A stretch of DNA of 64,000 nt from Heterodontus francisci (lineage: Eukaryota), in NCBI RefSeq assembly GCF_036365525.1, contig NC_090399.1:31466430-31530429 (forward strand), in the 5' to 3' direction. The translations under genes and the position numbers were made by a program. Every line of letters begins with the position of its first letter. Position 1 is the stretch's first letter. This document shows positions 1 to 38,098 of the stretch, in pieces. Under the pieces are notes generated by a model. It was not told the DNA's origin and did no database searches. It saw nothing but the letters and a program-made list of their open reading frames with translations.

Positions 1-189
1 TGGAGTTAAGCTGTGTAGAAACTGTGGAGGGTATAGACTGTTATAATCTTCTTTGTCTTTAGAATCAATTCTTTTAATTCAACTGACAGTTTTTGATTCA
101 AATCTAGTTAATCTTCATTTTTAGCGCAAAGAATAGCTTTTGAATGTTAAGCTGTATCAAATAAGTGTCCCCACCATTTTACCACACTT

Positions 190-500
190 AAGCAATTATA
201 TCATCACATCTACCCCCAAGCCATCCCCTCCCTCCCATGCCATCCCCAACCCATGCCATTCCGTCCTTACCATGCCATCCCTCTCATGCCACCCCATCCC
301 ATTCCTTCCATCCCTCTCATACCATCCCTATCCCGCTCTTTCCACCCCCATCCCTCCCATTAATGTCATCCTATCCCTCACAGACACAAGCTCTCCAGCC
401 AGGGTATCATTGTTGATGTGCTCCCTTTACCATGCACTGTTTTTGTTCTCCACCAACGACCCCACCCCCAACCCGCCACTGCCAATGACAGCCACATGAT
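190..500. repeat. Low-complexity CCCAT/CCATCC-rich tract
   Basis: Repeated ccatccc motifs; these explain the Pro/His-rich ORF 140..499. Confidence 0.6.
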
Positions 501-598
501 CATCTGTGCTCCAGTCCTCCCGGTGCCCTATGTGCCTCACATCCCACCAAATAAACTGACCAACAGACGTGCCTCCTAAACTGACCAATGAAAACAGT

Positions 599-764
599 CT
601 AGACAGCCCAAGCGCTGAGTATTATTACTATAGATGTGGCTCTGATTAGGGTCAACTTCTGCCTTGGGACTACGTTGAGGTACATTGGACTTCTCGGAAC
701 ACCCAGTAATGTGTAAGTGCATGAGAAGGTTGATAAACCGTTTTTGCATGTGTCAGTAGAATAC
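599..764 (-). CDS. NCR3-like: Terminal exon YSTDTCKNGLSTFSCTYTLLGVPRSPMYLNVVPRQKLTLIRATSIVIILSAWAV*
   Basis: The phase-2 acceptor tcaaacag|G leads into ORF 599..820, which has two Tyr motifs. The polypyrimidine tract is weak. A possible ATTAAA poly(A) signal lies at 78-73. Confidence 0.6.
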
Positions 765-3700
765 CTGTTTGATCCACGGTTGAATGCAGAGCATAAAGCC
801 AAGTGATGTGAGATAACCACCAGGGCTTAATCTCAAATTGTTGCAATAGATTGGCATCGTGGTGCCAAGCTGTGTTTCGTTATGTTCAGTATATCCATTC
901 GACCCCCAATAACGCTTAATGTCACGAAATAGCGAATTCTGTCACTCTAACCTAAGTCTAAAGGTCAATTGCTAGTGCAACATGAAAGCCCATATACGTC
1001 TTTGTCACTGACCTCAATGCCACCCGTAACAACAGGATAAATCAGTTCTGCTGACTGCACATGGTACTCCACAGGCACTGGTGAGAGACTAATAGCTGCA
1101 AACTAACTGTAATTATAGTGCTTGGTGAATTGGAACGTACCTTTCCATAGGAGTGTCGATCGATTGCTCTTCTTGGTTTACATCCTTTGGAACACAAGTT
1201 AAGCTCAGTCAGTGATTACTTGCATAAACGTTTTATATAGCTAAACAAAATGGAACATAATTCCTTACCATGCATAGAGGATCCGATTCAAGTAGATTCC
1301 CATCTTGATTCTGCCACAAAATAAAATATTTATCTACTGAAATATATATTTATATAGAACAAGAAATCCTAATTTATTACAGGAAGGATTCCTCTACGAG
1401 CTACCACTAGAGAAATCATAACTGTCTAATCTTAGAGTTAAAAACATTTTTTTTCAATTAGCATTGTAGCGAACAACTGGAAACTTTCTTCTGGCTATTA
1501 AGAGATAACAGCACAGAAAATAAAACTGGATAGATGAATGTTTCAAGCACACCCTCCCCGCCCGCCCACCTCCCCCCCCCCCACCCCCCACCCCCCCCCC
1601 CCCCCCACCCCACACCACCTAGAATAATTTGACTTACATTATACATCAATGGAAATCTTCTCGCTATCTTTAACATGTCACGAGCACAGAGGGAATAAAG
1701 GAAATATTCCCACTATGTTTAACATATCACTAACACATAGGAGCAAACAAATCCCCTTGGACTCAATCTTTACCATATCACCGAAACATTGGGACCAAAG
1801 GAATGTTCCCATTATGTTTACCTCACATTGAGACCAGAGGAAACTGTCTTACTATTTTTCTGCTTATGCTGTTGTCAACATACAGCAATACAATTAAATC
1901 TTGCTTCATTGTAGTCACGCCCATGCAGATATACATTGCCACATTCAAATAAAATTTCTGCATATAACTGGAAATACCAGAAATATTTTGGATACAAGCC
2001 TTGGATCTTAGGGCTTAATCAATATACATCAGTGGAATTCAGGCTCTCAAGGTGTTCCTCAACACAGATTAAACACTCACACAGGAAGGACTGGTAATGC
2101 TTGGTTGATCTTGGATTGTGCTGAGCATCCTTGGAATTGTACTCAAGCAAGACTAAGCCTTACCCTCCCCATTTTCTGCCACTGGGGATGTGTTATGACC
2201 TTCCATTGGAAAGAAATGGAAATATTGTGGTTGATTTATGAAAAATTAAACGTGAAGGACAGGCATGTTCCCTATGCCTACTTGATATCAGTTGAGTAGG
2301 TACAAATATAATGGCTTAGATGTTGCAGGTGAAGGAATAGGGTTCACTGGTCACCTCGCTGATCGCTGCCCATAAAGCTTTTGTGGACTTTAGAGCACAG
2401 ACTTGTTCGAATACGCCATCTGATACATTGAGGCGCCATCTATAGGGGGGTTTAAGGCATCTGTGAGCAAGGCAGGGAACAGTGAAGCTCGTCAACCAGT
2501 AAGATTGAAGAAAACTTACTGAAAGATGCAGGGGTGGAAGTTCATCTTGAGCGGTGGCACAGAATGGGTGGTATCAGATTGGCTGCCAATTATAACAGCT
2601 CATGATATTTAATCCCATTGACTGCAATGGAACCAAATATCAGGTACTGTGTATAACCAGTGGTCAATCTTCTATCACCTGATTTACACCACATGAGATG
2701 AATTTCTACCCCAGAGTCTAAACCAGGATGTATAAAGCAAGGAGTGTAAATTCGTTTTAAATCATACACAGAAAGCAAAATACAGATTCTAAAATACAGA
2801 TGGGATAAACAGAGAGAGATAGAAAAAAGCCATGGAGAAAAAGTTAATATATATTATCTGAAGAGCAAATATTTGCAGAGCTACAGGTAAAAGGCTGGGG
2901 AGTGGGACTGGCATAAACACATGGGCTGAATGGCCACCTTCTGTACTGTAACCATTCTATGATTCCACGAATATTTTTATTTAAATCTGCTACACTACAT
3001 ATTTTTCAAGGGAATGAGACTTCACACTTGTAAAATTAATTTTTCAGGGTCAAAGAGGTTGTTTGGCTGTAATTATCACACAGTTAAAAAGTCATTTCCT
3101 TCTGAATGAAACAGTTCTAATTATTTTCCACCATTCTTAGTGGGGAACTAGTAGGCGATTACACCAAGTTCAAGCCATTGCATTGCAATCAGTGCCAAGA
3201 CTATTGGCAAGGACTGCAACAGCGCACCCTGTGGAGGAGTAGGCTATTTCTGACAGCAACATCCCAATTTCCACATTTAACTGCGCATGTGCAGACACCA
3301 ACATTTGCTGTCAGATTTACCCCATTATAACAGAGTGCTGTTAGCCTCACAGTTATTCTTATTGCAAAATTTGGCTTATTATACATTCCTGCTAGATAAT
3401 TCATATATGATATTCATTTCCAGTAGCAGGCCAGTTATTTCTATGACCTACTATATCATTTAAGAAATGTACAGTTGGGAATATGTAGTCCAAACTGTAC
3501 TCTGGGAATGTAAGTTTCAAGTGATGTGATTTGCCTTCTTGTTGGGTTACTTACCAGATCTTGCATTCCTGCCAATTGAGACGAGTTTAAACTAGCTGCA
3601 AAATAAATCATGGGAATATAAATACAAAATATACTGGCAGGTCTCCCCGGCATTGCTCATGGCGAATAAGCGGGTGCACTGTTTTATAATAATGATAATC

Positions 3701-6700
3701 TGTGATCAAAAAAGACAGGTAAAATATTACGAGTATAGGTGTTGTTTACAGGAAGTGTATGTTATGTGTAAGATATTTACTATATTGCAAATATATCCAG
3801 GAAACATATAGCCATTCCAGCTTTGCTTAGTTGACAAAACTAAATGGTGAAAGTTGTGGATTCAAGCAACACTCCAGAACCTGAGTGCATAAACTCTCCC
3901 AGGCATTTCCGTCCAGTACTGAGGGAGTGCTGCACTGTCAAAGGTTCCTCATTCAGTGAGGTGTTAAAGAGAAATCACATCTGCCCGTTCCAGTAGACAA
4001 TAGGTCCCATTGCATCATTCAAAGAAGAGTAGGATGTTCTCCCAGTGTGCTGGTCAATATTCCTCCTATAAGCAACCCAACCAAGAAGCAGTTTAATGGT
4101 TATTACTCTCAGTTTGTGGCACTTTGCAGTGGGCAAATTGTCTGTCACTTAATCCATTGGTTGTCGAGTGCTCTGCGAGTCCCCAGTAATTATGTGTGGC
4201 AAATCAACTGACTGCATTTTAAAAGAAACAAACGCCATAATACATTTCAACAAAGTCAATTGAAACAATTATATTTTTAACCTAACCCACCCATCAGAAA
4301 TCTGATGAGATTGGGTGGAACATTGGTTTTACACCCGACGCAATATTACACTTCGTTGAAATCGGGAGAGTAATATTGAGTGTGGGGTGGCGGGTAGGGG
4401 GGAAAGGGGTGAAAGGGACATTGCGCCCGATCCTGTGGGATCCCTGCACCTCCAATGTCTCTTAGAACATCAGACAACGGAATGTCTCAGGTATTCATAC
4501 ACAAATATCACAAATAGATCAGAATCATTGAATAGAACAGTGCAGCACAGAAGGAAGCCATGCTGCCTGATGAGTCTGTGTGGGCCCTTTCACAAAGCAT
4601 CCAGTTAGTCCTCACTTCCTCACTCTTTCCCCATATCCTGGCAATTTTCCCCATTCTTCAAGAATGTATCCATTTCCCTGGAATTGTAAATTTGCTTTCT
4701 CTACACAACTTTGAGCTTTGCCCCTCTGCATTACTACATACAGACCCTTTGGATTAGAGACCTATTGAGGGATGAAATTGTAATTATCTATAGTGATGTT
4801 ATTTTTGTTAAATGGGACAGAAAAAAAGCAGTGAATATATGAATAGGAAGGGAATAGAGGGATATGGGCCCCGGAAGTGCAGAAGGTGTTAGTTTAGGCA
4901 GGCATCAAGATCGGCGCAGGCTTGGAGGGCCGAATGGCCTGTTCCTGTGCTGTACTGTTCTTTGTTCTTTGTTCAGTGGTGCCTTATGATAAATCAGATC
5001 CCAGAGACTGAGGATATGGATTCTTGTACAAATGTAACAAACTTTTCTAAAGAGATGAATATGAACACTTTTTAAGAATACAAAATATTTTCATGCTGGC
5101 AATTTGTGATCTTGATAAGTTTTGTTTAAAACAAAGCCATTAAATGATCTATGACAACTGTAAGGGTACATTTTGAAAAGCCTGATTTTAGGCATTTCCC
5201 TGAACCATAACCTGGGTATCAAATTGTTAGCTTTTAATCTAGTTTTAAAGCTTTGGATAGTAATTGCTTCTGTTCTAATATCCCCATGGAAGCTTATAGT
5301 GTTTGTCCATGGATTAAAAAACAACTTTTCTTACCCGCCGTGGAAGTGTTTTCTGGAATATCTGTTTCTTCTCTGCAAAGCAAGTAGATGATACAAGTCA
5401 ACTGCATGTTCTCATACCACAACAATTATGACTTATATTTATATAGCAACTTTAACATAATGAAACATTGCAAGTCACTTCACGGGAGCATTATAAAACA
5501 AAATACGGCACTGAGTCACATAAGGCTATATTAGGTCAGATGACCAAAAGCTGAGACAAAGAGTTAGGTTTAAAGGAGTGTCTGAAAGGAAGAAAATGAG
5601 GTAGAGAGGCGGAGAAATGTAGCGAGAGTATTCCACAGTTTTGTAGCATAGAAACATAGAAAAGCTTAAGGCATAGAAGTAGGCTGTTCTGCCCATCATG
5701 TCTGTGCGAGTCAAAAAAGAGTTATCCAGCCTAATCCTTCCAGATCACGTTCTGTAGCTCTGCAAATTACAGAATTTCAAGAATTTTTTTTTTTAATGCG
5801 ATGAGGTTTTCTGCCTCTACTGCCCTTTCTGGCAATGTGTTCCAGACCCCCAGCACCCTCTAAATGAAAACATTACTGCTCAACTCTCCTTTAATCCTTT
5901 GACCAATTGCTCTGTGTATTTCGTATATGAATGTATATTTATAACTTACTCACCTTTGCACCTGTTGAACATCTAATGAAAAGGGATATACAAAAGAAAA
6001 GTGGATTAGAAAATACATTTCTTATTACTTCACTCTTATTTCTTATCACCACCAGTTCTGCACATGGAGCAACACTGACTTCAAAATAATTAATTGTGGG
6101 AAGTGATTCTATATGTATGAGAGACATGATAAAGCCACTGTATGAATTTAAATTGTTTCATTTTTAAGGAATTTTACCTTAAAATGCATCTCTAGAATAA
6201 AATAGGCTGAGGGCTGGCCTAAGAAAAGTCATTAAAGTTCTGAAAAGGTTTGATGGGGTAGACTTAAAGATGGTGTTCCTTCTTGTGGGGAGAGTTCAAA
6301 ACTTGTGGTCATAAATATAAGATAGTCACTAATAAATGCAGTAAAGAATTAAGGAGGACCTCTAGCGGGACATATTGAGAGATTTGTTAGCAAAGCTTAT
6401 GGGATCTTAGGCTTCATAAATAGAGGTATTGAGTACAAAAGCTGGGAAGTTATGCTGAACCTTTATAAAGCTCTGGTTAGGCCCCAACTATGGTATTGTG
6501 TCCATTTCTGGTCACCACACTTTAGGATGGAAATGAGAGGGTGCAGAGCAGATTTACAAGAATGGTTCCCAGGGATGGACAATTTTAGTTCTAAGGTGAG
6601 ATTGGAAAAGCTGGTATTGTTCTCCCTGAAGCAAAGAAGCTTGAGGGGGGTAAAAACAGAAATTGCTAGAAATACTCAACAGGTCATGCAGTGGTGTGAT

Positions 6701-9700
6701 ACAAGTGAGTGGCAGTTAAGAGTCAACCACGTTGCTATATGTCTGGACTCAAATGTAGGCCAGACCAGGTAAGGACGGCAGATTTCCTCCCCTGAAAGAC
6801 ATTAGCTGGAGTGGTGAGATTTGAACTCATGTCTCTGGAATATTAATCCAGGCCTCTGGATTGCTAGCCTTGTAATATTACCACTATGCTGCCATCCCCT
6901 CTCATAATGTCCCCCATTTTGCATTAACACCCATCATAAATTCCTACCCCACTTCACAAAAATAACATCCCATTTATTTTTATTCTTCTACAGGTGCTGG
7001 AAGGTGGGATTAGAATGGTGGCTATTTTTTTCAGCCAGCACAGACATGATGGGCTGAATGGCCTGTTTCTGTGCCGTAACTTTTCTATGGTTCTAACATT
7101 GCGTTACTTTGATTCCAAAGGTCACAATACTGGATCTCAGGATTCACATCCATGATTTTTTGATTTGTTCATATAGGTAACCTTTCTAATCCATCCTTAA
7201 TTTCCATGAAAAGGTGTTGGTGGGTTTCTTCTTGAAGCAGCTTCTCTTATAACTAAGTATCTCGTACTTGAGAGAGCATCATGAGTCAAATGAAGTTACT
7301 TGCAGGTCCAAGTATGATGATATATTCCCTGCTGAGATTTTCCAAAGTTCTGTAACTTTCATAGCCATCCCCCCATTGTCAAATTATCGTATTCATTAGA
7401 TTTAACTTCACAGCTAACTAGAGTATGGTTTTAACTGACGACCACTGTGTTGTTCGCCCTGTACCATCGCTACTACATCACTGTACCCATCTGCCAATGT
7501 ACTCCTAGGACTGCCAATTGAATACCTCAGTGTTACGACCAGGTAAGAAAGGGGTCTAGGGATCCCTCTCAGCCTTCACCTGGTCTTACCATAACAGGGT
7601 TTAATTATCTTTATTTTAGCTTTTGTCATAAACCTTCTGAAGAAGGGTCACTGACCCGAAACTTTAACTCTGCTTCTCTTTCCACAGATGCTGCCAGACC
7701 TGCTGAGTGGTTCCAGCATTTCTTGTTTTTATTTCAGATTTCCAGCATCCGCAGTATTTTGCTTTTAGGTTAGTCATGTGACTAGCTGGTCTGACCACGT
7801 CTTGGCTCTATGGATTGTATCATCATAGCAGGATTTGGAAAACACTTCCCTGCCTTCAAAGTCTGGTGCTCAAAGTCCATTGTGGGTCAAATAGATAAGG
7901 CAAGTAATGTCACTTGTTCCTATTGGTATATAAATGTCGTCCAGCCAAGTGTCTGGCAGCCCTTATAACAGGCCTTCTCTTCTTCCCAGCAACAATTTGA
8001 AATTTAATGTCCATATGGAAACATTAATATGCCTCATTCTTGGCAGGTGGGGGTCTAGCATGACACTCGGGCTTAATTATTCAGATGTAAATCTTCCCAC
8101 CAGAATATTTCAAAACCTTAGCACTTGTCAAACAGCAAAGAATTTGCATCCTCACCTTTCTTTCTGCGTAACTGCACATAGCGGAGTGCAACGATTAGAA
8201 ATATGCCGATTTCCCCTGCTGCACTGATGAACAGGATTAACAGTACAGTCGTGATAGATTTTGTTTTCTCTATGGAGAAGAGAGCAAGTCAGATATAAGC
8301 ATAGGGACATAGGAACAGAAGGGGGCCATTCAACCCCTCCAGTCTGTTCCATCATTCAATTAGATCATTCTTGATCTCAATCTTAATTCAGCTACCATCT
8401 TCGATTTATATCCCTTACTACCATTGCCTAAAGAAATCCATCAATCTCAATTTTCCTGCCCTCGATAGCTTTCTGGGGAGAGCTCCAGATTTCCACCACC
8501 CTATGTGTGAAGAACTATCTTCTGAATTCACTGTTGAATAGCCTAGCTCTAATTTTAAGGTTATGCCCGCCCCCCCCCCCCCCCCACCCCCCCCCCCCCC
8601 CCCCACCCCGCTCTTGTTCTTGACTGTCCCATCAGAAGGAATAATTTATCTCCATGTAAATACCAAATCCTTTACTCATCTTGAACACCACATCCCGAGC
8701 ATTATTCTGGTATGTATTGAACCTCCAAGGTTAGCATATCCTTCCTGTGATGCCAAGAACTGAATGCAATAGTCCAGATGCAGTCCAAACAGATCTTGAA
8801 GTGACTGTACAATAACTTTCCCACTTTTGTAATCCAGCCTATCGATGGGATAAAAACTAACATTCCATTTGCTCTTATGTTTAGGTTTTGTACTTGTCCT
8901 CTAGCTGTTAGAATAATCAGCTCAGATGACTTCCAAAGTGACTACCAGACTCTTTTGTAAGTTCCAGGAGCACGATTTTCTTTTGATAAGCTCTTACTAA
9001 CTGAAACAGCAGGCACTCGGGATGGTGGTGGAATGGTGATGGAAGCACTTATGGTAAAAGCTACACAGCTATTTTAACATTGCAACTATCCCACTTACAA
9101 CAGGCAGAACAAATTAAAATCCACTCCACCCAGTCCCAGAGGGGCAAAGGGCAGTGTCTGACCCACTGCAACACCCAGCCCCAGAAGGGGAAAGGACAGT
9201 GTCTGACCTATTGCCCCACCCAGTCCCAGAGTGGGAAAGGACCGTGTCTGACCCATTGCCCCACCCAGTCCCAGAGTGGGAAAGGACAGTGTCTGACCCA
9301 TTGTCCCACCCAGTCCCAGAGTGGGAAAGGACAGTGTCTGACCCATTGTCCCACCCAGTCCTAAAGTATATGGATAATTGCAATTTCAGTTTGATGATAT
9401 TGCAGACAAGAGAATGACTGACCTATCACAGTGAGATATGTTCCTGTTCCATATTTCTTGTCGAGTCCTCTCATTTTCACGCTGCAGTAATACATCCCGA
9501 AATCGTTCACCCTCACCTCCTTTATTCCAATGGAAGCGTTGAAAAAATCCTCTTTTTTGGGCCAAAAGATCCGTCCTCTGTACTCTGCTTCTCTATTAGA
9601 AACTTCTGTTCCATTTCTGGCATTCTTGTACCAGTTATAACTCTCCTTCCCAAGAGACACATAGGCTGTGTGGGTGCAGGGGATGAGCACTGACTCCCCT

Positions 9701-12700
9701 TCCACCGCCTGAATACTCGGCAACTTCTGAATAACTCTGAAGTCGGCGCTAATTCCTAGAAACCAAATAAATTTAAAATTGTTACATTATGATTGGGAGT
9801 TGGAGCTTCCTTGGACAGCCGTGCAGGAGCGGATATGTAGGGCCGATTTTCAAAGTCGACTTGCTTGTGCCAGCACATCCCCTTTTTATATATGTAACCA
9901 ACCAACAAGTTTGCTTTCCAACGTATAATGTTTTTAATATAGACGTTCCTCCGCTATTTACACACAATTTGAATAAAAAGGTGGAAGGGAGTTTCTCAAA
10001 ATGGAGACGTGTGACCAGTGGTGTTCCACAGGGATCCGTGCTGGGACCACTGTTTGTGATATACATAAATGATTTGGAGGAAAGTATAGGTGGTCTGATT
10101 AGCAAGTTTGCAGACGACACTAAGATTGGTGGAGCAGCAGATAGTGAAGGGGACTGTCAGAGAATACAGCAGAATATAGATAGATTGGAGAGTTGGGCAG
10201 AGAAATGGCAGATGGAGTTCAATCCGGGCAAATGCGAGGTGATGCATTTTGGAAGATCCAATTCAACAGTGAACTATACAATAAATGGAAAAGTCCTGGG
10301 GAAAATTGATGTACAGAGAGATTTGGGTGTTCAGGTCCATTGTTCCCTGAAGGTGGCAACGCAGGTCAATAGAAGGCATACGGCATGCTTTCCTTCATCG
10401 GACGGGGTATTGAGTACAAGAGTTGGCAGGCCATGTTACAGTTGTATAAGACTTTGGTTCGGCCACATTTGGAATACTGCGTGCAGTTCTGGTCGCCACA
10501 TTACCAAAAGGATGTGGATGCTTTGGAGAGGGTGCAGAGGAGGTTCACCAGGATGTTGCCTGGTGTGGAGGGCGCTAGCTATGAAGAGAGGTTGAGTAGA
10601 TTAGGATTATTTTCATTAGAAAGACGGAGGTTGAGGGGGGACCTGATTGAGGTGTACAAAATCATGAGAGGTATAGACAGGTTGGATAGCAAGAAGCTTT
10701 TTCCCAGAGTGGGGGATTCAATTACTAGGGGTCACGAGTTCAAAGTGAGAGGGGAAAAGTTTAGGGGGGATATGCGTGGAAAGTTCTTTCCGCAGAGGGT
10801 GGTGGGTGCCTGGAACACGTTGCCAGCGGAGGTGGTAGACGCGGGCATGATAGCGACTTTTAAGATGCATCTAGACAGATACATGAATGGGCAGGAAGCA
10901 AAGAGATACAGACCCTTAGAAAATAGGCGACAGGTTTTGATAAAGGATCTGGATCGGCGCAGGCCTGGAGGGCCGAAGGGCCTGTTCCTGTGCTGTAATT
11001 TTCTTTGTTCTTTGTATTACATACATTGCCCCATATTCAATTCCACTCACTTCGGGAGCACCGAATATCACAGGTGTGGCATAAAAGGCAGTAAAAGTCA
11101 TCGCGCCTGTTTTGCGTCCCCATCTGTGTCTAATTTCACCCCCAGTCTGTAACTGCTTATGTATAATGGTTAAATAGTCTCCTCTCTGTAGCTAAGGCTG
11201 ATTCTTTCTTGGGAGTCCACCGCAGCGCAGCCATTGTGACAGATGCGCCAATTGAAGATAGGGCCCCACATTGTTCAGCTGATTCTCCCCCACCCCCATT
11301 GCTCATTTGATATTGCAGACAGCAAAATGACTGACCTCTGACGGTGAGATTTGTTCCTGTTCCATATTCCTCGCCCAGTTGCAGTATTGTCACTTTGCAG
11401 TAATACACCCCGGAATCGTTCACTCTCACGTCCTTTATTTGTATGGACGATTCTCCAGTATGAAAGAAATCCTCTTTGTCTCCGTAGATCCGTCCTGTGT
11501 ACTCTGCTGTCCCATTGGAAACTTCGATGCCATTCCTGTACCAGCTATAATACCCTATTACATTGGAGGCGTTGGCTGTGTATGTACAGTGGAGGAAGAC
11601 TGTCTGTCCTTCCACTGCCAGAATCCTGGGCTCCTTTTGAATAACTGTGAACTTCTCAGCGTTACTTCCTGGAAATCAGAAAAAAAAGTCTCTGCTATCT
11701 GATTGGAAGTTGGAACTTTGAGAGACAATCGTGCAGGTTGATGCAGAGGGATGGGAACAGGCACGGTGGAGTGTAAATACCGGGATGGAACGGTTGGGCC
11801 GAATGGCCTTTTTTGTGCCGGACATTCTATGTAATTATGCAGTAAGGCAAAAGCTGATTGACGTGTGTCCATCACTGGATAATGACAGCAACTTATATTT
11901 ATCTAATGTCTTTAATAATAACGAAATGTCCTGAGGCACATCACAGGAGGATTAAAAAACATTTGACAGCAAGCCACATATAATCGGAACAGGAGTAGGC
12001 CATTCAGCCCATTGAGCCGACAGGAGAATGACTGACCTCTCACAGTGAGACTTGTTCCTGCTCCATATTTCTCGCCCAGTTGCATCAATTGCACTTGGCA
12101 GTAATACACACCCGAATCGTTCACTCTCACGTCCTTCATTAGTATGGACGCATCTCCAGTATGAAAAAAATCCTCGCTGTGTCTGTAGATCCGTCCTCTG
12201 TACTCTGCTGTCTCATTGGAAACTTTTATGCCATTTCTGCCATCTTTGTACCAGCTATAAGATCCGATCATGGAGACGCTGGCTGTGCAGGTGCAGGGGA
12301 GGAAAACTGTTTGTCCTGCCTCTGCCAGAGTCCTGGACAACTTTTGAATAACTGTGAACCTCTCAGCCTTACATCCTGGAAATCAGAAAAAGAAGATTGG
12401 ACGTTGGAACTTTGAGAAAATGATTAAGGCAAACAGCCAAAAGCTTGGTCAAAGAGGTTGGTTTAAGGAATGTCTTAAAGGAAGAAAATGAGGTGGAGAT
12501 GTTTAGGGAGGAAATTCCAGAGCTTAGGGCCTTGGCCATGGAAGACACGGCCACCAATGGTGGAGCCATTAAAGTCGGGGATGCTCAAGAGACCGGAAAT
12601 AGAGGAGCACAGATATGTCAGAGGATTGTGGGACTGCGGGAGATGACAGTAAGGAAGGTGTGAGGCCATGACGGCATTGAAAACCACGATAAGATTTTTT

Positions 12701-14418
12701 AAATCGAAGCATTGCTTAATCAGGGGCCAGTGTAGGTCATTGAACACAGTGGGAGATAGGAGAACGGGACAGGGTGCGAGTAAGAATACAGGCACCAGGA
12801 TTTTGGATGACCTTATGCTTAGAGAGTAGAATGTTGGAGACCAGCTAGGAGTGCATTGGAATAGTCAAGTCTAGAGGTAACAAAGGAATGGATGAAGGTT
12901 TCAGCAGCAGATGATCTGACATGGTGTATGTAAAAACAAGAAATGCTGGAAATACTCAACAGGTCTGGCAGCATCTGTGGAGAGAGAAGCAGAGTTAACA
13001 TTTCAGGTCAGTGATCCTTCTTCAGAACTGGCAAATATTAGAAATGTCAAAGGTTATAAGCAAGTAAAGCGGCAGTGGGGCAAGAGATAACAAAAGAGAA
13101 GGTGTAGCTAGGACTAGGTCACAGAATAGCTGACCAGAAGGTCATGGAGCAAAGGCAAACAATATGTTAATGGTGTGTTGAAAGACAAAGCATTAGTACA
13201 GATAGCGTCATCGTCATACAGCACTGAAACAGGCCCTTCAGCCCACCAGGTCTGTGCCAACCAACATCCACCCATTTATACTAATCCTACATTAATCCCA
13301 TATTCCCTACCATCTACTTGCACGAGGGGCAATTTACAATGGCCAATTTACCTATCAACCCTCAAGTCTTTGGCTGTGGGAGGAAACTGGAGTACCTGGC
13401 AGAAACCCACACAGTCACAGGGAGAGCTTGCAAACTCAGCACAGGCAGCACCCAGAAGTGAACCCAAGTCTCTGGAGCTGTGAGGTGGCAGTGCTAACCA
13501 CTGCACCACTGTACCAGGTGTTAACAGACTGAAAATTGAACAGCAGCAATTACAAACATGAAAAAACAATGGGTAAGGAAACTGAACAAACTAAGATGAA
13601 ATAAAATAAACACACAAAAATATATAAAAAAGAAAAAATAACTAAAAATCAAAGTAAAATGGGGTGCCCGTCATGCTCTGAAATTACTGAACTCGATGTT
13701 CAGTCCAGCAGGCTGTAGTGTGCCTAATTGGCAAATGAGATGTTGTTCCTCGAGCTTGCATTGATGTTCACTGGAACACTGCAGCAATCCCAGGACAGAG
13801 ATGTGAGCATGAGAGCAGGGGAGAGTGCTGAAATGGCAAGCAACCGGAAGCTTGGGGTCCTGCTTGCGGACTGAGCGGAGATGTTCCGCAAAGTGACATG
13901 GTGTATAGTTTGGCAATGTTATGGGGATGAAAATAGGTGGTCTTAGTAATGCAGTGGATATGTAGTCAGAAGCTCATCGCAGGGTTACATGTGACACCAA
14001 GGTTATGAGTAGTCTGGTTCAGCCTCAGATACTTGCCGGGGAGAGGGATGGTGTCAGTAGCTAGGGAACAGAATTTGTAGTTGGGACTGAAGGCAATGGC
14101 TTTGTTCTTCACAATATTTAACTAGAGGAAATTTCTGCTCATTCAGTACCGAAAGTCTGACTAACAGCAACAGTGGAGGAGTCGAGAGAGGTGATGGTGA
14201 GGTTGAATAAATAACATCTTGGGCAATATAGCAAAAAGGCTGATAGTAATTGAGCAGTGCATTTGCACTGTGCCCACCTCGCTTTTGTATTGCCCATTCA
14301 GTATTGCCCTTTTTTGCACAGTCACCCAAGACAAACCTATACCCCTTAAGAAACAATGCAATGTCCACTTACCCAAGAGGGCAGCCAATATCCATAGGAT
14401 CCATAGGATGGGGCTCAT
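599..14418 (-). CDS. NCR3-like: NKp30/NCR3-family type I receptor with three VJ-type Ig domains; spliced model join(14373..14418,12037..12375,11336..11668,9423..9755,8156..8269,5954..5972,5335..5372,3555..3595,1269..1310,1141..1184,599..764), 1515 nt, 504 aa
   Basis: All introns are GT-AG and the phases chain without a stop (1,1,1,1,1,2,1,0,0,2). The V domains align by eye with human NKp30 (EVRNGTPEFRGRL vs EVSNGTAEYTGRI; IRDVRGHD vs IKDVRVND; CRVEVLGLGVGTGNGTRLVV vs CKVTILQLGEEYGTGTNLTV). The ectodomain and TM are more certain than the tail. Confidence 0.85.
1141..1184 (-). CDS. NCR3-like: 44-nt cytoplasmic micro-exon DVNQEEQSIDTPME(R)
   Basis: Acceptor ttgtgttccaaag after an 84-nt intron, donor AAG|gtacgt, phase 0 to 2. 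Confidence 0.7.
1269..1310 (-). CDS. NCR3-like: 42-nt cytoplasmic micro-exon NQDGNLLESDPLCM
   Basis: Acceptor ttattttgtggcag, donor ATG|gtaagg, phase 0-0. Confidence 0.7.
1638..1667 (-). CDS. Possible optional 30-nt exon IARRFPLMYN
   Basis: Donor AAT|gtaagt, weaker acceptor catgttaaag. Phase 0-0 fits between the 3555 and 1310 exons but is not required. Confidence 0.3.
3555..3595 (-). CDS. NCR3-like: 41-nt cytoplasmic micro-exon (A)SLNSSQLAGMQDL
   Basis: Acceptor tttattttgcag, donor CTG|gtaagt. Only the phase-1 frame is open; ends in phase 0. Confidence 0.75.
3850..4170 (+). mobile_element. Degenerate DeuSINE (SacSINE1-like)
   Basis: gtactgagggagtgctgcactgtc...gaagagtaggatgttctcccagtgtgctggtcaatatt, shared with the copies at 45.5, 54.1 and 62.1 kb. 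Confidence 0.55.
5335..5372 (-). CDS. NCR3-like: 38-nt cytoplasmic micro-exon EETDIPENTSTA
   Basis: Acceptor cttgctttgcag, donor CGG|gtaaga, phase 2 to 1. Confidence 0.75.
5954..5972 (-). CDS. NCR3-like: 19-nt cytoplasmic micro-exon (D)VQQVQ(R)
   Basis: Acceptor cccttttcattag, donor AAG|gtgagt. Phase 1 to 2 is corrected exactly by the next 38-nt exon. Confidence 0.72.
7531..8065 (-). mobile_element. Internally deleted solo LTR (related to the 25945 and 58389 LTRs), with a Penelope terminal fragment at about 7615-7768
   Basis: TG...CA termini, flanks ctcag/ctcgg (5 bp, 1 mismatch). The ends match the reverse complement of the other LTR ends (cccccacctgccaaga; cacctggtcgtaaca). Confidence 0.75.
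8156..8269 (-). CDS. NCR3-like: Transmembrane exon EKTKSITTVLLILFISAAGEIGIFLIVALRYVQLRRKK
   Basis: Acceptor ctctcttctccatag, donor AAG|gtgagg, 114 nt, phase 1-1. About 24 hydrophobic residues followed by a basic stop-transfer RRKK. Not in the ORF track. Confidence 0.88.
9126..9361. repeat. 45-bp minisatellite, about 5 copies
   Basis: The unit CCCACCCAGTCCCAGAGTGGGAAAGGACAGTGTCTGACCCATTG(T/C) is repeated head-to-tail. Confidence 0.93.
9423..9755 (-). CDS. NCR3-like: Ig V domain 3 (VJ in one exon): GISADFRVIQ...LIPC...YNWY...DFGMYYC...YGTGTYLTVI
   Basis: Acceptor ttggtttctag, donor G|gtcagt, 333 nt, phase 1-1. Overlaps ORF 9361..9723. Confidence 0.93.
9980..11013 (+). mobile_element. 5'-truncated CR1 LINE, antisense in the V2-V3 intron
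   Basis: RT motifs GVPQGSVLGP, KFADD, LEYCVQFWSP; (ttctttg)n tail. Confidence 0.93.
11336..11668 (-). CDS. NCR3-like: Ig V domain 2 (VJ in one exon): GSNAEKFTVIQ...FLHC...YSWY...DSGVYYC...YGTGTNLTVR
   Basis: Acceptor tttctgatttccag, donor G|gtcagt, 333 nt, phase 1-1. Lies within ORF 11157..11615. Confidence 0.93.
12037..12375 (-). CDS. NCR3-like: Ig V domain 1 (VJ in one exon): GCKAERFTVIQ...FLPC...YSWY...DSGVYYC...YGAGTSLTVR
   Basis: Acceptor tttctgatttccag, donor G|gtcagt, 339 nt, phase 1-1. Canonical Cys, Trp, DxGxYxC and J-like GxGT motifs. Confidence 0.93.
12930..13893 (-). mobile_element. 5'-truncated Penelope-like element (GIY-YIG C-terminus, 3'UTR and terminal repeat)
   Basis: ORF 13671..13916 (HFAEHLRSV...PVACHF...LGTLQPAGLN). 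13-bp TSD tgacatggtgtat at 12917-12929 and 13894-13906. Confidence 0.85.
13205..13515 (-). mobile_element. tRNA-derived V-SINE (HE1-like) inside the Penelope element
   Basis: Reverse strand reads cagtggtgcagtggttagcac...gagtttgcaagctctccctgtg...ttcctcccac. Confidence 0.8.
14373..14418 (-). CDS. NCR3-like: Leader exon MSPILWILWILAALL(G)
   Basis: ATG at 14418 and a hydrophobic 15-mer. Phase-1 donor G|gtaagt at 14372. Acceptor ccttccactgcag just upstream (exon starts 14422). Confidence 0.88.
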
Positions 14419-23900: not shown

Positions 23901-25487
23901 TTTCTTCTCCTTTGGCCTCCTTGTCTCGAGAGACAATGGGTAAGCACCTAGAAGTGGTCAGTGGTTTGTGAAGCAGCACCTGGTGTGGCTAAAAAGGCCA
24001 ATTCTAGAGTGACAGACTCTTCCACTGGTGCTGCAGATAAAATTGGTTGTCGGGGCTGTTACACAGTTGGCTCTCTCCTTGCGCTTCTGTCTTTTTTCCT
24101 GCCAACTGCTAAGTCTCTTCAACTCCCCACTCTTTAGCCCTGCCTTTATGGCTGTCCACCAGCTCTGCCAATCACTGGCAACTGACTCCCACGACTTGTG
24201 GTTAATGTCACAGGACTTCATGTTGCATTTGCAGACGTCTTTAGAGTGGAGACAGGGATTGCCGGTGGGTCTGATACCAGTGACAAGCTCGCTGTACAAT
24301 GCGTCATTGGGGATCCTGCCATCTTCCATGCGGCTCACATGGCCAAGCCATCTCAAGCGCCGCTGGCTCAATAGGGTGTATATGCTAGGGATGTTGGCTG
24401 CCTTGAGGACTTCTGTGTTGGAGATATGGTCCTGCCACCTGATGCCAAGGATTCTCCGGAGGCAGCGAAGATGGAATGAGTTGAGACGTTGCTCTTGGCT
24501 GACATACGTTGTCCAGGCCTTGCTGCCATAGAGCAAGGTACTGAGGACACAGGCTTGAAACACTCGGACTTTTGTGTTCCGTGTCAGTGTGACATTTTCC
24601 CACACTCTCTTGGCCAGTATGGACATAGCAGCAGTCGCTTTTCCTATGAGCTTGATGATTTCTGCATCGAGAGACAGGTTACTGGTGATAGTTGAGCCTA
24701 GGTAGGTGAACTCTTGAACCACTTCCAGAGCGTGGTCACAGATATTGATGGATGGAGCATTTCTGACATCCTGTCCTATGATGTTCGTTTTCTTGAGGCT
24801 GATGGTTAGGCCAAATTCGTTGCAGGCAGCTGCAATCCTGTCAATGAGTCTCTGCAGACACTGTTCTGTGTGGGATGTTAATACAGCATCGTCAGCAATG
24901 AGGAGTTCCCTGATGAGGACCTTCCGTACTTTGGTCTTCGCTCGAAGATGGGCAAGGTTGAACAACCTACCATCTGATCTTGTGTGGAGGAAAATTCCTT
25001 CTTCTGAAGACTTGAACGCATGTGAGAGCAGCAGTGAAAAGAAGATCCCAAACAGTGTAGGTGAGAGAACACAGCCCTGTTTCACGCCACTCAGGATAAG
25101 AAAGGGGTCTGATGAGGCACCGTTATGCTGAATTGTGCCTTTCATATTGTCATGGAATGAGGTGATGATGCTTAGTAGCTTTGGTGGACATCCAATCTTT
25201 GCCAGTAGTCTGAAGAGACCACATCTGCTGATGAGGTCAAAGGCTTTGGTGAGACCTATGAAAGCAATGTAGAGGGGCATCTGTTGTTCGCAGCATTTCT
25301 CCTGTAGCTGGTGAAGGGAGAACAGCATGTCAATGGTGGATCTCTCTTCTCGTAAGCCACACTGTGCCTCAGGGTAGACACGCTCAGCCAGCTTCTGGAG
25401 TCTGTTTAAAACAACTCGAGCGAAGACTTTCCCCACTATGCTGAGCAGGGAGATTCCACAGTAGTTGTTGCAATCACACAGTAGTTG
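23901..25487 (-). mobile_element. 5'-truncated RTE-clade LINE with an open 513-aa RT-to-C-terminus frame, inserted antisense in a CR1 fragment
   Basis: ORF 23958..25499 (GVKQGCVLSPTLF, LIADD, FTYLGS, RRLRWLGHV). TSD ttgggc(a/g)gacaagt at 23887-23900 and 25488-25501. Confidence 0.93.
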
Positions 25488-25944
25488 TTGGGCGGACAAG
25501 TGGTAGATGAAATTTAATGCAGAGAAGTGTGAAGTGGTTCATTTTGGTAGCAAGAACAAGGAGAGGTTCTCCCACTGTAGTATATCGGGGAGCTGGAAAC
25601 TGTGTAAAACCCCTCGGGCTGCATGTACCAGAGAATGTTTATGGTGTGTAATGCAAATATACATGTCCTGGAAGTGATTAGCAAATTCTGCTACCTTGGG
25701 TCCACAGTGACAGACAATCTGTCCCTTGATGCTGAGCTTGATACAGGTGTAGGGAAAGCAGCTACCAGCTTTGGCCAACTTGTGGAATGTGGATAGGATA
25801 GCACCAGACTGACCCTTAGGACCAACCTGATGGTTTATAGGGCATGGGTTCTCAGTGGGTTCTTGCTGTATGGCTGTGAGACATGGGCGACTTACAGCAA
25901 CCAGGAAAAAAAGCTCAATAAATTCCATCTTTGCTGTCTGCAAT

Positions 25945-32194: not shown

Positions 32195-35100
32195 TTCATT
32201 TTGTTTGCACTGGAGTGCTGACTTGGGGCTGCATTAGAGTGCTAAAGTGGGAGTTTTGTGACTGAGTGAGTTAGGTGAGGAAGGAGTGAGGAGCTCCTTT
32301 CATTTCCTACCTGTCCTCAAAGAGCGTGAGGGGAGCCAAGAGTTTCCAAAGAGCACAGCTGACTGGTGAGTAAGTCCTGGTGGGTATTTTTCAAACTGGA
32401 TTGAATTGTAAGTCATTGTTTTAGCAAGACTTAGATTTTTTTTTTATTATAATAGTCTTCTAAAGTTTTAAATTTAAAGGGTTTTGTCATGGCAGGAGAG
32501 CTTAAAGCCGTGGTTTGCTCCTCTTGCTGCATGGGGGAATCCAGGAACATTTCCAGTCCCCGGGACCAGCATGTGTGCAGGAAGTGTGTCCAGCTGCAGC
32601 TCCTGGAAGATCAGGTTTCAGAGCTGGAATGGTGACTGGAAACACTCTACAGCATCCGTGAGTCTGAGAGCATCGTGGATAGCACGTTTAGAGAGGTGGT
32701 CACACCGCAGCTGAAGGGACTTGAGGAAGGAAGGAAATGGGTGACCACCAGGCAGTCCAAGAGAAACAGGCAGGTAGTTCAGGAGTCCCCTGCTTTTAAA
32801 TCGGTATTCTATTTTGGAGGCTGATGAGGCTGCTTCCTCCTGGGAGTGCTGACAGAGCCAAGCTTCTGGCACCACAAGCAGCCTGTCTGCACAGGAAGGG
32901 AGAAAGTGAGGAATAGTAATAGGGGATTCTATAATCAGGGCAACAGATAGACGCTACTGTGGCCATCAACGTGACTCCAGAATGGTGTGTTGCCTCCCTG
33001 GTGCCAGGGTCCAGGATGTCACTGAACGGCTGCAGGGCATCCTGAAAGGGGAGGGTGATAAGGCAGAGGTCATGGCACATGTTGGTACCAATGACATAGG
33101 TAGAAAGAGGGATGAGGACTTGCATCAAGAATTCAGGGAGTTAGGCAGAAGACTAAAAAACAGGACATCTCGGGTTGTAATCTCTGGATTACTCCCAGTG
33201 CCACGTGCGAGCGAGTATAGAAATAGGAGAATAGCACAGATGAATGCGTGGCTTAAGAGTTGGTGCAGGAGGGAGGGTTTTAGATTCCTGGACCACTAGG
33301 ACCGTTTCTGGGGAAGGTGGGACCTGTACAAGCGGGATGGTCTCCATCTGAACCAGAGGGGGACGAACATCCTTGCTGGCGGGTTTGCTAGTGCAGTTGG
33401 GAGGAGTTTAAACTAATCTGGCAGGGGGAGGGGACGCAGACACCTAGCAGAATAGGGACACAGCTAAACAGAGGAAAGCAAACAAGTCAGAGGGAATACA
33501 GCGGAAGTAAGTTTCAAGGGAGTAAGACCAGGATGGATGGCCTCTACTTTAATGCCAGGACTATGACAGGCAAAACGGATGAGTTAAGGGAAAGGATTGA
33601 CACGTGGAATTGTGATATAGTAGCCATCACAGAGACATGGTTGAGGGAGGGGCAGGATTGGCAGCTCAATATCCCGGGATATAGAATCTTCAGGCGAGAC
33701 AGAGGAAGGGTTAAAGAGGAGGGGGCATTGCAATATTAGTTAAGGAGTCAGTTACTGCAGTAAGGAGAGATGATATCTTGGAGGGGGCATCAAAGGAAGC
33801 TTTATGCGTAGAGTGTAGGAATAAAAAAGGGAAGTCAAATTGCTCGGTGTTTATTATAGACCCCCAGATAGTCAGCGGGAAATTGAGGAGCAAATATGTG
33901 CGCAATTCACAGAGGTGTGTAAAAATAATAATAGGGTCATGATATTAGGTGATTTCAACTTTCCCAACATTAATTGGGATAGTTATCATGTTAAGGGCTT
34001 AGATGGAGTGGAGTGCTTAAAATGTATACAGGAGAACCTTTTAGCTCAATATGTAGAGGATCCAACAAGGGAGGGTGCAGTGCTGGACCTAATTCTGGGG
34101 AAGGAAGCCGGACAGGTGGTTGATGTGTTGGTGAGGGAGTATTTTGGTGATAGCGACCACAATATGGTACAGTTTAAGCTTGTTATGGAGAAAGAAATAG
34201 ACAAGTTGCAAAAAAAGGTTTTGGATTGGGGGAGAGCGAATTTTAGTAAAATAAGGAAGGATCTGGCCAAGGTAGACTGGAAAGAGTTACTTGTCAGCAA
34301 ATCTACAGAAGATCAGTGGGGAGCATTCAAAAAGGAAATGGGGAGGGTACAGGCCCAACATGTTCTCTCTAGGGTAATAGGTAGGAGCAACAAGACCAGA
34401 GAACCATGGATGACCAGAAACATTCAGGGAACGATGAGAAGGTAAAGAGAGGCTTTTAGCAAATACCAGGAAAGCAAATCAACGGAAGCATTAGTGGAGT
34501 ACAGAAAGTGTAGGATGGAGCTTAAGAAAGCAATTAGGAGAGCAAAGAGGGGATATGAGAAAGCTCTGGCTGGTAAAAGTAGGGAAAATCCCAAGATATT
34601 CTATAAGTATATCAATGGGAAGAGGATAACCAGGGAAAGAATAGGACCTAGGGAAGGGAGTGTAGATAGTCTCAGTCATCTCATTATCAAAAAGGAGGAG
34701 GTGTTGGGTGTCTTGCAAAGCATTAATGTAGATAAGTCCCCAGGGCCTGATGGGATCAACCCCAGAATACTGAGGGAGGCAAAGGAAGAAATTGCTGGGG
34801 CCTTGACAGAATTCTTTGCATACTCATTGGCTACAGGTGAGGTCCCAGAGGACTGGAGAATAGCCAATGTTGTTCCTTTGTTTAAGAAGGGTAGCAAGGA
34901 TAATCCAGGAAATTATAAGCCGGTGAGCCTTACGTCAGTGGTAGGGAAATTATTAGAGAGGATTCTTATGGACAGGATTTACTCCCATTTGGAAACAAAT
35001 GGACTTATTAGCGAGAAGCAGCATGGTTTTGTGAAGGGGAGGTCGTGTCTCACTAATTTGATTGAGTTTTTTGAGGAAGTGACAAAGATGATCGATGAAG

Positions 35101-38098
35101 GAAGGGCAGTGGATGTTATCTAAATGGACTTCAGTAAAGCCTTTAACAAGGTCCCTCATGGCAGACTGATACAAAAGGTGAGGTCACATGTGATCAGAGG
35201 GGAGCTGGCAAGATGGATACAGAACTGGCTCGGTCATAGTAGACAGAGGGTAGCAGTGGAAGGGTGCTTTTCTGAATGGAGGGATGTGACTAGTGGTGTT
35301 CCGCAGGGATCAGTGCTGGGACCTTTGCTGTTTGTAGTATATATAAATGATTTGGAGGAAAATGTAGCTGGTCTGATTAGTAAGTTTGCGGACAACACAA
35401 AGGTTGGTGGAGTTGCGGACAGTGATGAGGATTGTCAGAGGATACAGCAGGATATAGATCAGTTGGAGACTTGGGTGGAGAAATGGCAGATGGAGTTTAA
35501 TTCGAACAAATATGAGGTAATGCATTTTGGAAGGTCTAATGCAGGTGGGAAGTATACAGTAAATGGCAGAACCCTTAGGGGTATTGACAGGCAGAGAGAT
35601 CTGGGCGTACAGGTCCACAGGTCACTGAAAGAGGCAATGCAGGTGGATAAGGTAGTCAAGAAGGCATACAGCATGCTTGCCTTCATCGGTCTGGGCATAG
35701 AGTATAAAAATAGGCAAGTCATGCTGCAGCTGTACAGAACTTTAGTTAGGCCACACTTAGAATATTGCGTGCAATTCTGGTCGCCACACTACCAGAAGGA
35801 TGTGGAGGCTTTGGAGAGGGTACAGAAGAGGTTTACCAGGATTTTGCCTGGTCTGGAGGGCATTAGCTATGAGGAGAGGTTGGATAAACTCGTATTGTTT
35901 TCACTGGAACGACGGAGGTGGAGGGGCAACATGATAGAGGTTTACAAAGTTATAGGCGGCATGGACAGAGTGGATAGTCAGAAGTTTTTTCCCAGGGTGG
36001 AAGAGTCAGTTACTAGGGGACATAGGTTTAAGGTGCAAGGGGCAAAGTTTAGAGGGGATGTGCGAGGCACGTTCTTTACACAGAGGGTGGTGAATGTCTG
36101 GAACTTGTTGCCGGGGGTGGTAGGTGCCGTAGGTGGAAGCAGGTACCATAGAGACGTTTAAGAGGCATCTTGACAAATACATGAATAGGATGGGAATAGA
36201 GGGATATGGACGCCGGAAGTGCAGATGGTTTTAGTTTAGGTAGGCATCAAGATCGGCGCAGGCTTGGAGGGCTGAATGACCTGTTCCTGTGCTGTACTGT
36301 TCTTTGTTCTTTGACCCATTAGGGACCAAGGGGGAAATATGTGGGTGGAGCCAGAGGACATTGGTAGGGTGTTGAATGAACACTTCATATCTGTCTTCAC
36401 CCAAGAGAATGAGGATGTAGATATGGAACTCAGAGAGAGAGACTGTGAGGTTCTTGAGCAAATTGTCATAGGGAGTGACAAGATATTGGAGGTTTTGGCA
36501 GGCTTAAAAGTGGACAAACCTCCAGGTCCGGATAATTTGTGTCCCTGGATGCTGTGGGAGGTGAGGGTGGAGATTGCAGGGGCTCTGACCCAAATTTTTA
36601 ACTCCTCTCTGGCCACGGGGGAGGTGCCAGAGGACTGGAGAACAGCTAATGTGGTCCCACTATTTAAGAAAGGTTGTAGAGAGATAAGCCACGGAACTAC
36701 AGACCAGTGAGTCTCACGTCAGTGGTAGGGAAACTATTGGAGAAAATTCTGAAGGAGAGAATCTATCTCCACTTGGAGAGGCAAAATTTGATTAGGAATA
36801 GTCAGCATGGCTTTGTCAAAGGGAGGTCATGCCTAACAAATGTGATTGAATTTTTTGAGCATGTGACCAGGCGTATAGATGAGGGTAGTGCAGTTGATGT
36901 AGTTTACATGGATTTCAGCAAAGCCTTTGACAAGGTCCCACATGGGAGACTTATCAAGAAAGCAAATGCACATGGGATACAAGGTAACTTGATAAGGTGG
37001 ATTCAAAATGGGCTTAGCTGTAGGAGACAGAGAGTGATGACAGATGGCTGTTTTAGTGACTGGAAGCCAGTGTCCAGTGATGTACCACAGGGATCTGTGC
37101 TGGGTTCCCTATTGTTTGTCATTTATATAAACGACATAGATGACTATGTGGGGGGTAGGATCAGTAAGTTCGCGGATGACATAAAGATTGGCCAAGTGGT
37201 TAACAGTGAGGTTGAGTGTCTTGGGTTACAGGAAGATATAGATGGGATGGTCAAATGGGCAGAAAAGTGGCAGATGGAACTTAACCCTGAAAAGTGTGAG
37301 GTGATACACTTTGGAAGGAGTAATGTGACACCGAAGTATTCAATGAATGGCCTGACACTGGGAAGTTCCGAGGAACAAAGGGACCTTGGTGTGTTTGTCC
37401 ATAGATCTCTGAAGGCAGAAGGGCAGGTTAATAGGGTGGTGAAAAAGGCATATGGGACACTTGCCTTTATCAATCGAGGCATAGATTACAAAAGCAGGGA
37501 GGTCATGTTGGAGTTGTACAGAACTTTGGTAAGGCCACAGCTGGAGTACTGTGTGCAATTCTGGTCGCCACATTATAGGAAGGATGTGATTGCACTGGAG
37601 GGGGTGCAGAGGCGAATCACCAGGTTGTTGCCTGGGATGGAACATTTAAGCTATGAAGAGAGGTTGGATAGGCTTGGGTTGTTTTCGCTGGAGCAGAGAA
37701 GACTGAGGGGTGACCTGATCGAGGTGTATAAGATTATGAGGGGCATGGACAGGGTGGATAGGGAGCAGCTGTTCCCCTTAGTTGAAGGGTAAGTTACTAG
37801 GGGACACAAGTTTAAGGTGAGCGGCAGGAGGTTTACGGGGGATTTGAGGAAGAACTTTTTTACCCAGAGGGTGGTGACGGTCTGGAATGCCCTGCCTGGG
37901 AGGGTGGTAGAGGCGGGTTGCCTCACATCCTTTAAAAAGTACCTGGATGAGCATTTGGCACATCATAACATTCAAGGCTATTGGCCACGTGCTGGCAAAT
38001 GGGATTAGGTAGACAGGTCAGGTGTCTTTAGTGCATTGGTGCAGACTCAATGGGCCGAAGGGCTTCTTGTGCACTGTATTATTCTGTGATTCTGTGAT
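32195..38098 (+). mobile_element. Near full-length but mutated CR1 LINE (5'UTR, ORF1 Zn-finger and SGNH esterase, ORF2 APE-RT), interrupted by a second CR1
   Basis: ORF1 CRKCVQLQ and HVGTNDIGRK; APE ITETWL, GDFNFP, SDH; RT 36707..37792; (attctgtg)n tail. In-frame stops are present. Confidence 0.92.
34649..36312 (+). mobile_element. 5'-truncated CR1 inserted co-directionally into the host CR1
   Basis: Has its own (ttctttg)n tail. gacc is duplicated at 34645-48 and 36313-16, and removing the insert restores ...aataggacccattagggacc... Confidence 0.8.

Follow-up and report, generated by a model that had tools for sequence, protein, structure and literature searches.

A 64,000-nucleotide stretch of horn shark (Heterodontus francisci) DNA, hereafter the window, carries on its minus strand, at 1141-14418, a gene for a receptor with three V domains of the type found in the natural killer (NK) cell receptor NKp30 (NCR3). 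We read the product of this triple-V gene as an expressed type I membrane receptor of an elasmobranch-specific NCR3/NKp30-like branch. Within a paired-receptor family it is probably the counterpart that lacks the immunoreceptor tyrosine-based inhibitory motif (ITIM), with a non-inhibitory, possibly activating or modulatory function. The initial annotation of this DNA had proposed a complete, phase-consistent model of eleven exons; ten of the eleven are correct to the base, and the three V domains and the transmembrane (TM) glutamate also hold, whereas the eleventh exon, at 599-764, does not.

We built a profile from the three V exons and searched it against 1.84 billion proteins with HMMER. 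The best match (E 4e-183) was P0001, which is RefSeq XP_067865773, a protein of 452 residues named "protein turtle homolog B-like isoform X2". Two further proteins cluster with it: P0151, isoform X1 (511 residues, "protein turtle-like"), and P0152, isoform X3 (409 residues, "signal-regulatory protein beta-2-like"). The gene is already covered by RefSeq models (XP_067865770-775), named "protein turtle-like" or "SIRP beta-2-like", and these names are misleading for it. Ten exons lie within the window, with GT..AG borders and consistent phases, together with the alternative end of isoform X3:

14373-14418, minus strand: exon 1, start codon and signal peptide MSPILWILWILAALLG, ending in phase 1 at a GT donor; equals residues 1-16 of P0001, P0151 and P0152
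12037-12375, minus strand: exon 2, V1, a VJ-type V-set domain (Cys...WY...DSGVYYC...YGAGTSLTV), phase 1-1; Pfam V-set E 9.9e-12, tblastn match to P0001
11336-11668, minus strand: exon 3, V2, a VJ-type V-set domain, phase 1-1; Pfam V-set E 7.1e-14, alignment
9423-9755, minus strand: exon 4, V3, the membrane-proximal VJ-type V-set domain, phase 1-1; Pfam V-set E 2.7e-11
8156-8269, minus strand: exon 5, stalk of five residues (EKTKS), then the TM helix, which has Glu at its centre, and a basic stop-transfer sequence, RYVQLRRKK; identical (100%) to residues 350-388 of P0001
5954-5972, minus strand: exon 6, 19-nt cytoplasmic mini-exon DVQQVQ; RNA joint 5372/5954, RefSeq models
5335-5372, minus strand: exon 7, 38-nt mini-exon REETDIPENTSTA; RNA joints 5372/5954 and 3595/5335, tail alignment
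3555-3595, minus strand: exon 8, 41-nt mini-exon ASLNSSQLAGMQDL; RNA joints 3595/5335 and 1310/3555, tblastn 100%
1269-1310, minus strand: exon 9, 42-nt mini-exon NQDGNLLESDPLCM; RNA joints 1310/3555 and 1184/1269, tblastn
1141-1184, minus strand: exon 10, 44-nt mini-exon DVNQEEQSIDTPME, the last exon within the window; RNA joint 1184/1269, tail alignment
4204-4211, minus strand: coding start (V-S-stop) of the alternative terminal exon of isoform X3; acceptor 4212/4211, P0152 C-terminus

The ten exons reproduce P0001, P0151 and P0152 exactly, as far as each isoform runs, up to ...DTPME. When P0001 was aligned to them by tblastn, identity was 97-100% per exon-sized match, with mismatches confined to matches that overran exon ends into the intron.

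Expression was assessed with Logan RNA contigs from four runs of one sample, placed on positions 1-6000 of the window; such contigs show presence rather than absence. In each of two of the four runs, a spliced contig carried the joints 5372/5954, 3595/5335, 1310/3555 and 1184/1269. All four read CT..AC on the plus strand, that is GT..AG on the minus strand, and the five tail mini-exons are therefore spliced in RNA as modelled. The joints leader-V1, V1-V2, V2-V3 and V3-TM are taken from the three RefSeq models. At the coding start of the terminal exon of isoform X3 (4204-4211) the four runs showed no RNA depth.

The same contigs form pile-ups of very high depth, up to about 1.6e5, on short intronic segments at 1201-1400, 3914-3944 and 4834-4974, where many ends are loose and an odd joint, 4974->1310 with 30 inserted letters, recurs. 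They probably stem from expressed copies of a repeat, or from transcripts of paralogues that share the exon 9 region, rather than from the triple-V gene. The introns of the gene also contain long poly-C/poly-G tracts (40-60 nt), at 1552-1619 and 8566-8609, and reads seem to be cut at 1550-1622.

A six-frame motif scan of the window found exactly three Y-Y-C...G-x-G-T-x-L-x-V domains, which are the three V exons, each of them above the Pfam V-set cut-off (E 1e-11 to 7e-14). As judged by Pfam, motif scan and alignment, each V domain is encoded by a single exon and has both cysteines, the tryptophan, D-x-G-x-Y-x-C and the J-like strand G-x-G-T-x-L-x-V. V1 is 72% identical to V2 and 56% identical to V3 at the protein level; all three are intact, and the pairwise ratios of non-synonymous to synonymous substitution rates (dN/dS) are 0.43-0.69 (0.69 for V2 versus V1). 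The three-V ectodomain is a putative ligand-binding array.

The V domain is nearer to NKp30 than to other V-set families, by its ranking against solved structures and by its named relatives. When the V profile was run against all PDB sequences, the top four matches were human NKp30 (9fww, 3noi, 3pv6 and 6yjp; E 8e-18 to 1e-17), followed by multi-domain pIgR at about 1e-12 and then by IgNAR V, SIRP V and single-chain antibody fragments at 1e-9 to 1e-7. The named relatives in the HMMER search include nurse-shark NCR3 (QTT61898 and QTT61904) and RefSeq "NCR3-like" proteins of horn shark, zebra shark, lungfish and newt. The two nurse-shark entries presumably stem from the published shark NCR3 study; the shark NCR3 family is reportedly highly divergent, with eight subtypes. 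Together with Pfam, these rankings and names support the initial proposal that the gene encodes an NKp30/NCR3-family receptor with three VJ domains.

We also built a tree of 44 V domains. It has no outgroup (no Ig, T-cell receptor, SIRP or CD28 sequences), and the case for NCR3 membership accordingly relies on the ranking of the PDB matches and on the named relatives. Every chondrichthyan sequence, nurse-shark NCR3 included, falls in one clade (96/95); inside it, V1, V2 and V3 belong to an elasmobranch subfamily (95/89) that stands apart from the two clades holding QTT61898 and QTT61904. V3 is sister to domain 2 of a two-V protein of the catshark Scyliorhinus canicula (P0003, XP_038671255; 98/92), which places the layout of a distal plus a proximal V domain before the split of horn shark and catshark. 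V1 and V2 group among horn-shark paralogues with a single V domain (XP_067865377/378 and isoforms, P0153, P0006 and P0155; XP_067865388-391 and isoforms, P0005 and P0154), so that V2 is a younger duplicate. A word-index homology search with the P0151 tail and the P0005 V region, in an index that is shallow, returned only horn-shark paralogues. There is no marker of the major histocompatibility complex (MHC) in the 64-kb window; the cluster-mate of one Polypterus (bichir) relative is a predicted fusion to PRRC2A, an MHC class III gene, which is an indirect hint of MHC linkage.

The cytoplasmic tail differs between the isoforms. After ...DTPME, isoform X1 continues with RQDYEYEELNTTARYDPQ... and about 45 more residues. 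Isoform X2 adds S-E-I-stop after exon 10, three codons of the next exon, and isoform X3 departs after exon 7, ends in V-S-stop and is nearly tail-less. The acceptor at 4212/4211 is the sole one within the window below 5335 that gives ...TAVS-stop, and it matches the C-terminus of P0152. By tblastn and regular expressions, the X1 and X2 continuations are not encoded in the window; their terminal exons must therefore lie beyond its start. The terminal exon of X1 has Y-E-E-L, then five residues, then Y-D-P-Q, of which the second tyrosine is not conserved in the paralogues.

We aligned the regions following the J-like strand of the three isoforms with those of the horn-shark paralogues and of bamboo shark, catshark and Mobula proteins. 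The subfamily tail begins with one to three copies of a 19-residue unit, DVQQ.Q.QE.DIPE.TST, spread over a 19-nt and a 38-nt exon; exons 6 and 7 together make one such unit, which is repeated two to three times in paralogues. There follow a block NQD.NL.E.DPLCM, the motif S-I-Y-x-P-M, a stretch of about 60 residues with an ITIM (IQYTEI, IQYATI, VQYATI, IQYAVI or IHYATL) and finally D-[YF]-[GE]-Y-[DE]-E-L-N, about 29 residues past the ITIM tyrosine. Conservation of S-I-Y-x-P-M, the ITIM and Y-[DE]-E-L extends across horn shark, bamboo shark, catshark and Mobula. Receptors that recruit tandem-SH2 phosphatases are laid out in this way, with a second Y-x-x-L about 29 residues after an ITIM, and the alignment suggests that the subfamily tail is of this inhibitory type and not of the CD3/CD79 type. 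The triple-V gene departs from it: it reads SIDTPM, with Asp where the family has Tyr, and the ITIM stretch is missing from all three isoforms, X1 passing from ...DTPME directly to the DYEYEELN exon. A match to [ILVS]-x-Y-x-x-[ILV] in the distal tail, which in inhibitory receptors of the Ig superfamily is usually accompanied by another tyrosine motif at a distance of 20-30 residues, was found in the paralogues and orthologues and in none of the three isoforms.

In the reading we favour, that of an ITIM-less member of a paired-receptor family, the ectodomain consists of three VJ domains that are joined in the germline and encoded by one symmetrical exon (phase 1-1) apiece. V3 is an old membrane-proximal domain common with the catshark, and V1 and V2 are younger duplicates akin to the single-V paralogues. 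V3 is followed, with hardly any stalk, by the TM helix, whose Glu may serve helix-helix association with itself or with a partner chain. The mini-exon tail is homologous to the inhibitory-type tail, with only the distal acidic Y-E-E-L left, encoded outside the window, and any signalling would pass through this single tyrosine and/or through a TM-associated partner.

Several points weigh against this reading. One or more terminal exons lie outside the window, and the ITIM exons may survive in the genome and merely be skipped. The losses of the tyrosine and of the ITIM could equally mean functional decay. The juxtamembrane L-R-Y-V-Q-L, which is unique to this gene and adjoins the membrane, formally matches the ITIM pattern. 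The RefSeq models, which are the basis for the V1-V2-V3-TM joints, may be partly homology-driven, and the roles in signalling and binding are predicted. The gene may be activating, modulatory or decaying.

Decay is the strongest of the alternatives, although we consider it unlikely. The triple-V gene would then be a recent offshoot of the ITIM-bearing paralogues that is losing its tail and has no distinct signalling role. The change of Tyr to Asp and the loss or skipping of the ITIM segment, both relative to the family consensus in the tail alignment, would fit such a course, as would the fairly high dN/dS (0.43-0.69) and the three different C-termini of three isoforms, one of them stopping three codons into its next exon and another nearly tail-less. 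However, leader, V exons and TM exon are intact, the gene is transcribed and correctly spliced, and isoform X1 retains the distal Y-E-E-L exon in frame, along with the conserved C-terminal stretch. In paired-receptor families, moreover, ITIM-less partners are the norm.

A further alternative concerns the TM segment. The TM exon reads ITTVLLILFISAAGEIGIFLIVAL; its helix has 24 residues, with Glu at position 15 and no basic residue. With the match to P0001, this agrees with the TM Glu noted in the initial annotation. In the alignment, the column of this Glu also holds Glu in the single-V paralogue P0155, which keeps its ITIM, and holds Thr in the paralogue P0154, His or Asn in bamboo sharks and Gln in Mobula, where the alignment is approximate. 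Since the ITIM-bearing P0155 has it too, the TM Glu is no mark of an adaptor or of a CD3/CD79-like subunit. A position that is polar across the subfamily would be better explained by a helix-helix contact, with itself or with a partner chain, than by a salt bridge of the adaptor type. The juxtamembrane L-R-Y-V-Q-L lies at 8156-8180, where the paralogues read L-R-C-V-Q-L.

With the Glu confirmed, the protein could be a partner chain whose Glu pairs with a basic TM residue, for example in tail-less, Arg-TM NCR3-like receptors, in a hetero-oligomeric NKp30-like receptor to which its tail supplies the tyrosine. We regard this as improbable, since the column is Thr, His, Asn or Gln in relatives and Glu in a paralogue with an ITIM of its own, a pattern that a general polar contact explains better, and the usual partners of Arg-TM receptors are adaptors with Asp: CD3 zeta, FcR gamma or DAP12. 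Its most specific form is more doubtful still: here the Glu-TM, ITIM-less, triple-V chain would make up half of a hetero-oligomeric receptor of the NKp30 type, in which its Glu pairs with the Arg of NCR3 paralogues that have no tail and its acidic Y-E-E-L tyrosine gives a hemITAM-like signal. If true, such a hetero-oligomer would be a complex of germline VJ receptors built on the plan of an antigen receptor, with a signalling chain of its own.

The proposed eleventh exon comes from an open reading frame (ORF) at 599-764. It is open downstream of an AG acceptor (765/764), follows exon 10 in the right phase and reads ...CTYTLLGVPRSPMYLNV... to a stop. It carries YTLL-x7-YLNV, which had been taken for an immunoreceptor tyrosine-based activation motif (ITAM) and whose final motif position, Val, is non-canonical. 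This exon is part of none of the three RefSeq isoforms. RNA depth was zero over 401-1000 in the four runs, including the two with spliced upstream exons, and no joint reached 764 (as 764/1141 would have done); tblastn of seven family proteins found no similarity to the ORF. We therefore reject 599-764 as the terminal exon and, on annotation, homology and RNA contigs, treat its "ITAM" as a chance ORF. The gene does have a long cytoplasmic tail of its own, as had been claimed, of about 130 residues in isoform X1; the ITAM content assigned to it, and the tail of about 115 residues with paired tyrosines that was to end in 599-764, have to be given up. So has adaptor-like ITAM signalling: no annotated or transcribed tail contains Y-x-x-[LI], 6-8 residues and Y-x-x-[LI], and the tail is homologous to those of ITIM-bearing receptors. 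That the gene ends in this exon and, with its TM Glu, encodes a self-signalling CD3/CD79-like subunit is hardly credible: CD3 and CD79a chains typically have an acidic TM residue, and the DNA does contain the motif in an open, in-phase frame, but isoforms, RNA and homologues all lack the exon and the Glu occurs in P0155 as well. The protein shares with CD3 and CD79 an acidic TM residue and a tail tyrosine; it differs from them in having no ITAM in its annotated or transcribed tail and in having a three-V array, not a single small Ig domain.

Since the ITAM claim fails, the locus offers no new signalling principle. NKp30/NCR3 is, to our knowledge, the one NK receptor traceable across jawed vertebrates, and its VJ domain has been discussed as a relative of the antigen-receptor precursor. 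The elasmobranch branch described here stacks VJ domains through exon duplication, the proximal domain being old and the distal ones young. Its long tail, conserved across sharks and a ray, combines an ITIM with Y-[DE]-E-L in a distal position, and the branch also has ITIM-less members such as the triple-V gene, which is the pattern of a paired inhibitory/non-inhibitory receptor system. The locus supplies concrete constructs for tests of NK/T-cell receptor signalling in sharks.

Mammalian NKp30 and the triple-V protein have in common a non-rearranging V domain on a single exon, with the J-like strand G-x-G-T-x-L-x-V, and the blocks FLPC, IGS..W, EV.NGT.E(F/Y)RGR and DVR..D...Y.C; NKp30 is also the best match among solved structures. 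In mammalian NKp30 a single V domain and a stalk are joined to a TM segment with Arg and a short tail, and signalling runs via CD3 zeta/FcR gamma. This combination of TM Arg, short tail and CD3 zeta/FcR gamma dependence is not what we found in the horn-shark protein, with its three V domains, its near lack of a stalk, its TM Glu and, in isoform X1, the tail of about 130 residues. In the single-V paralogues, the V domain shows 70-73% identity to V1 and V2, and the TM exon is 66-73% identical. Their tails, too, have the mini-exon repeat, NQD.NL.E.DPLCM and the terminal D-[YF]-[GE]-Y-E-E-L-N; in contrast to the triple-V protein, they have one V domain and keep S-I-Y-x-P-M and the ITIM (IQYTEI or IQYATI).

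Tandem NCR3-type VJ domains occur in further proteins, all of them predicted:

Catshark XP_038671255: two V domains
Mobula XP_062903900: two V domains
Mobula XP_062903898: at least five V domains
Sawshark: two V domains
Bombina XP_053577099: three V domains
Leptodactylus KAM3931049, named NCR3: three V domains
Polypterus XP_039626092: two V domains

Given such proteins in several vertebrates, the possession of three V domains is one variant of a recurring design. In the catshark protein, domain 2 is orthologous to V3, and the catshark and Mobula tails have the family motifs. The relatives differ from the triple-V protein in that V numbers vary, with duplications that are mostly lineage-specific, and in that the catshark and Mobula proteins keep the ITIM. 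The catshark protein P0003 is predicted without a TM segment, V2 leading directly into a cytoplasmic-type tail, and its TM exon was probably missed by the annotation. This tail has the ITIM VQYATI and a formal ITAM, YDEL-x6-YPQL; we rejected the latter as a family feature, its second tyrosine not being conserved in horn shark, bamboo shark or Mobula.

The introns of the gene contain repeats. A 45-bp minisatellite (5.2 copies, 91% match) occupies 9126-9361, in the intron that directly follows the V3 exon when read along the gene, and accounts for several long ORFs on both strands there. The V2-V3 intron holds, in antisense, a reverse-transcriptase fragment of a long interspersed nuclear element (LINE) at 9789-11152 on the plus strand (RVT_1, E 2e-12); its ORFs are still long, at 255-268 residues, and it is probably a fairly young insertion. 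Between 16000 and 64000 we found no further V-J domain or other host gene, and LINE remnants predominate:

23958-25499, minus strand: RVT_1 ORF (Pfam RVT_1)
46975-48345, minus strand: RVT_1 ORF (Pfam RVT_1)
35124-36161, plus strand: RVT_1 ORF (Pfam RVT_1)
36707-37792, plus strand: RVT_1 ORF (Pfam RVT_1)
33840-34445, plus strand: endonuclease ORF

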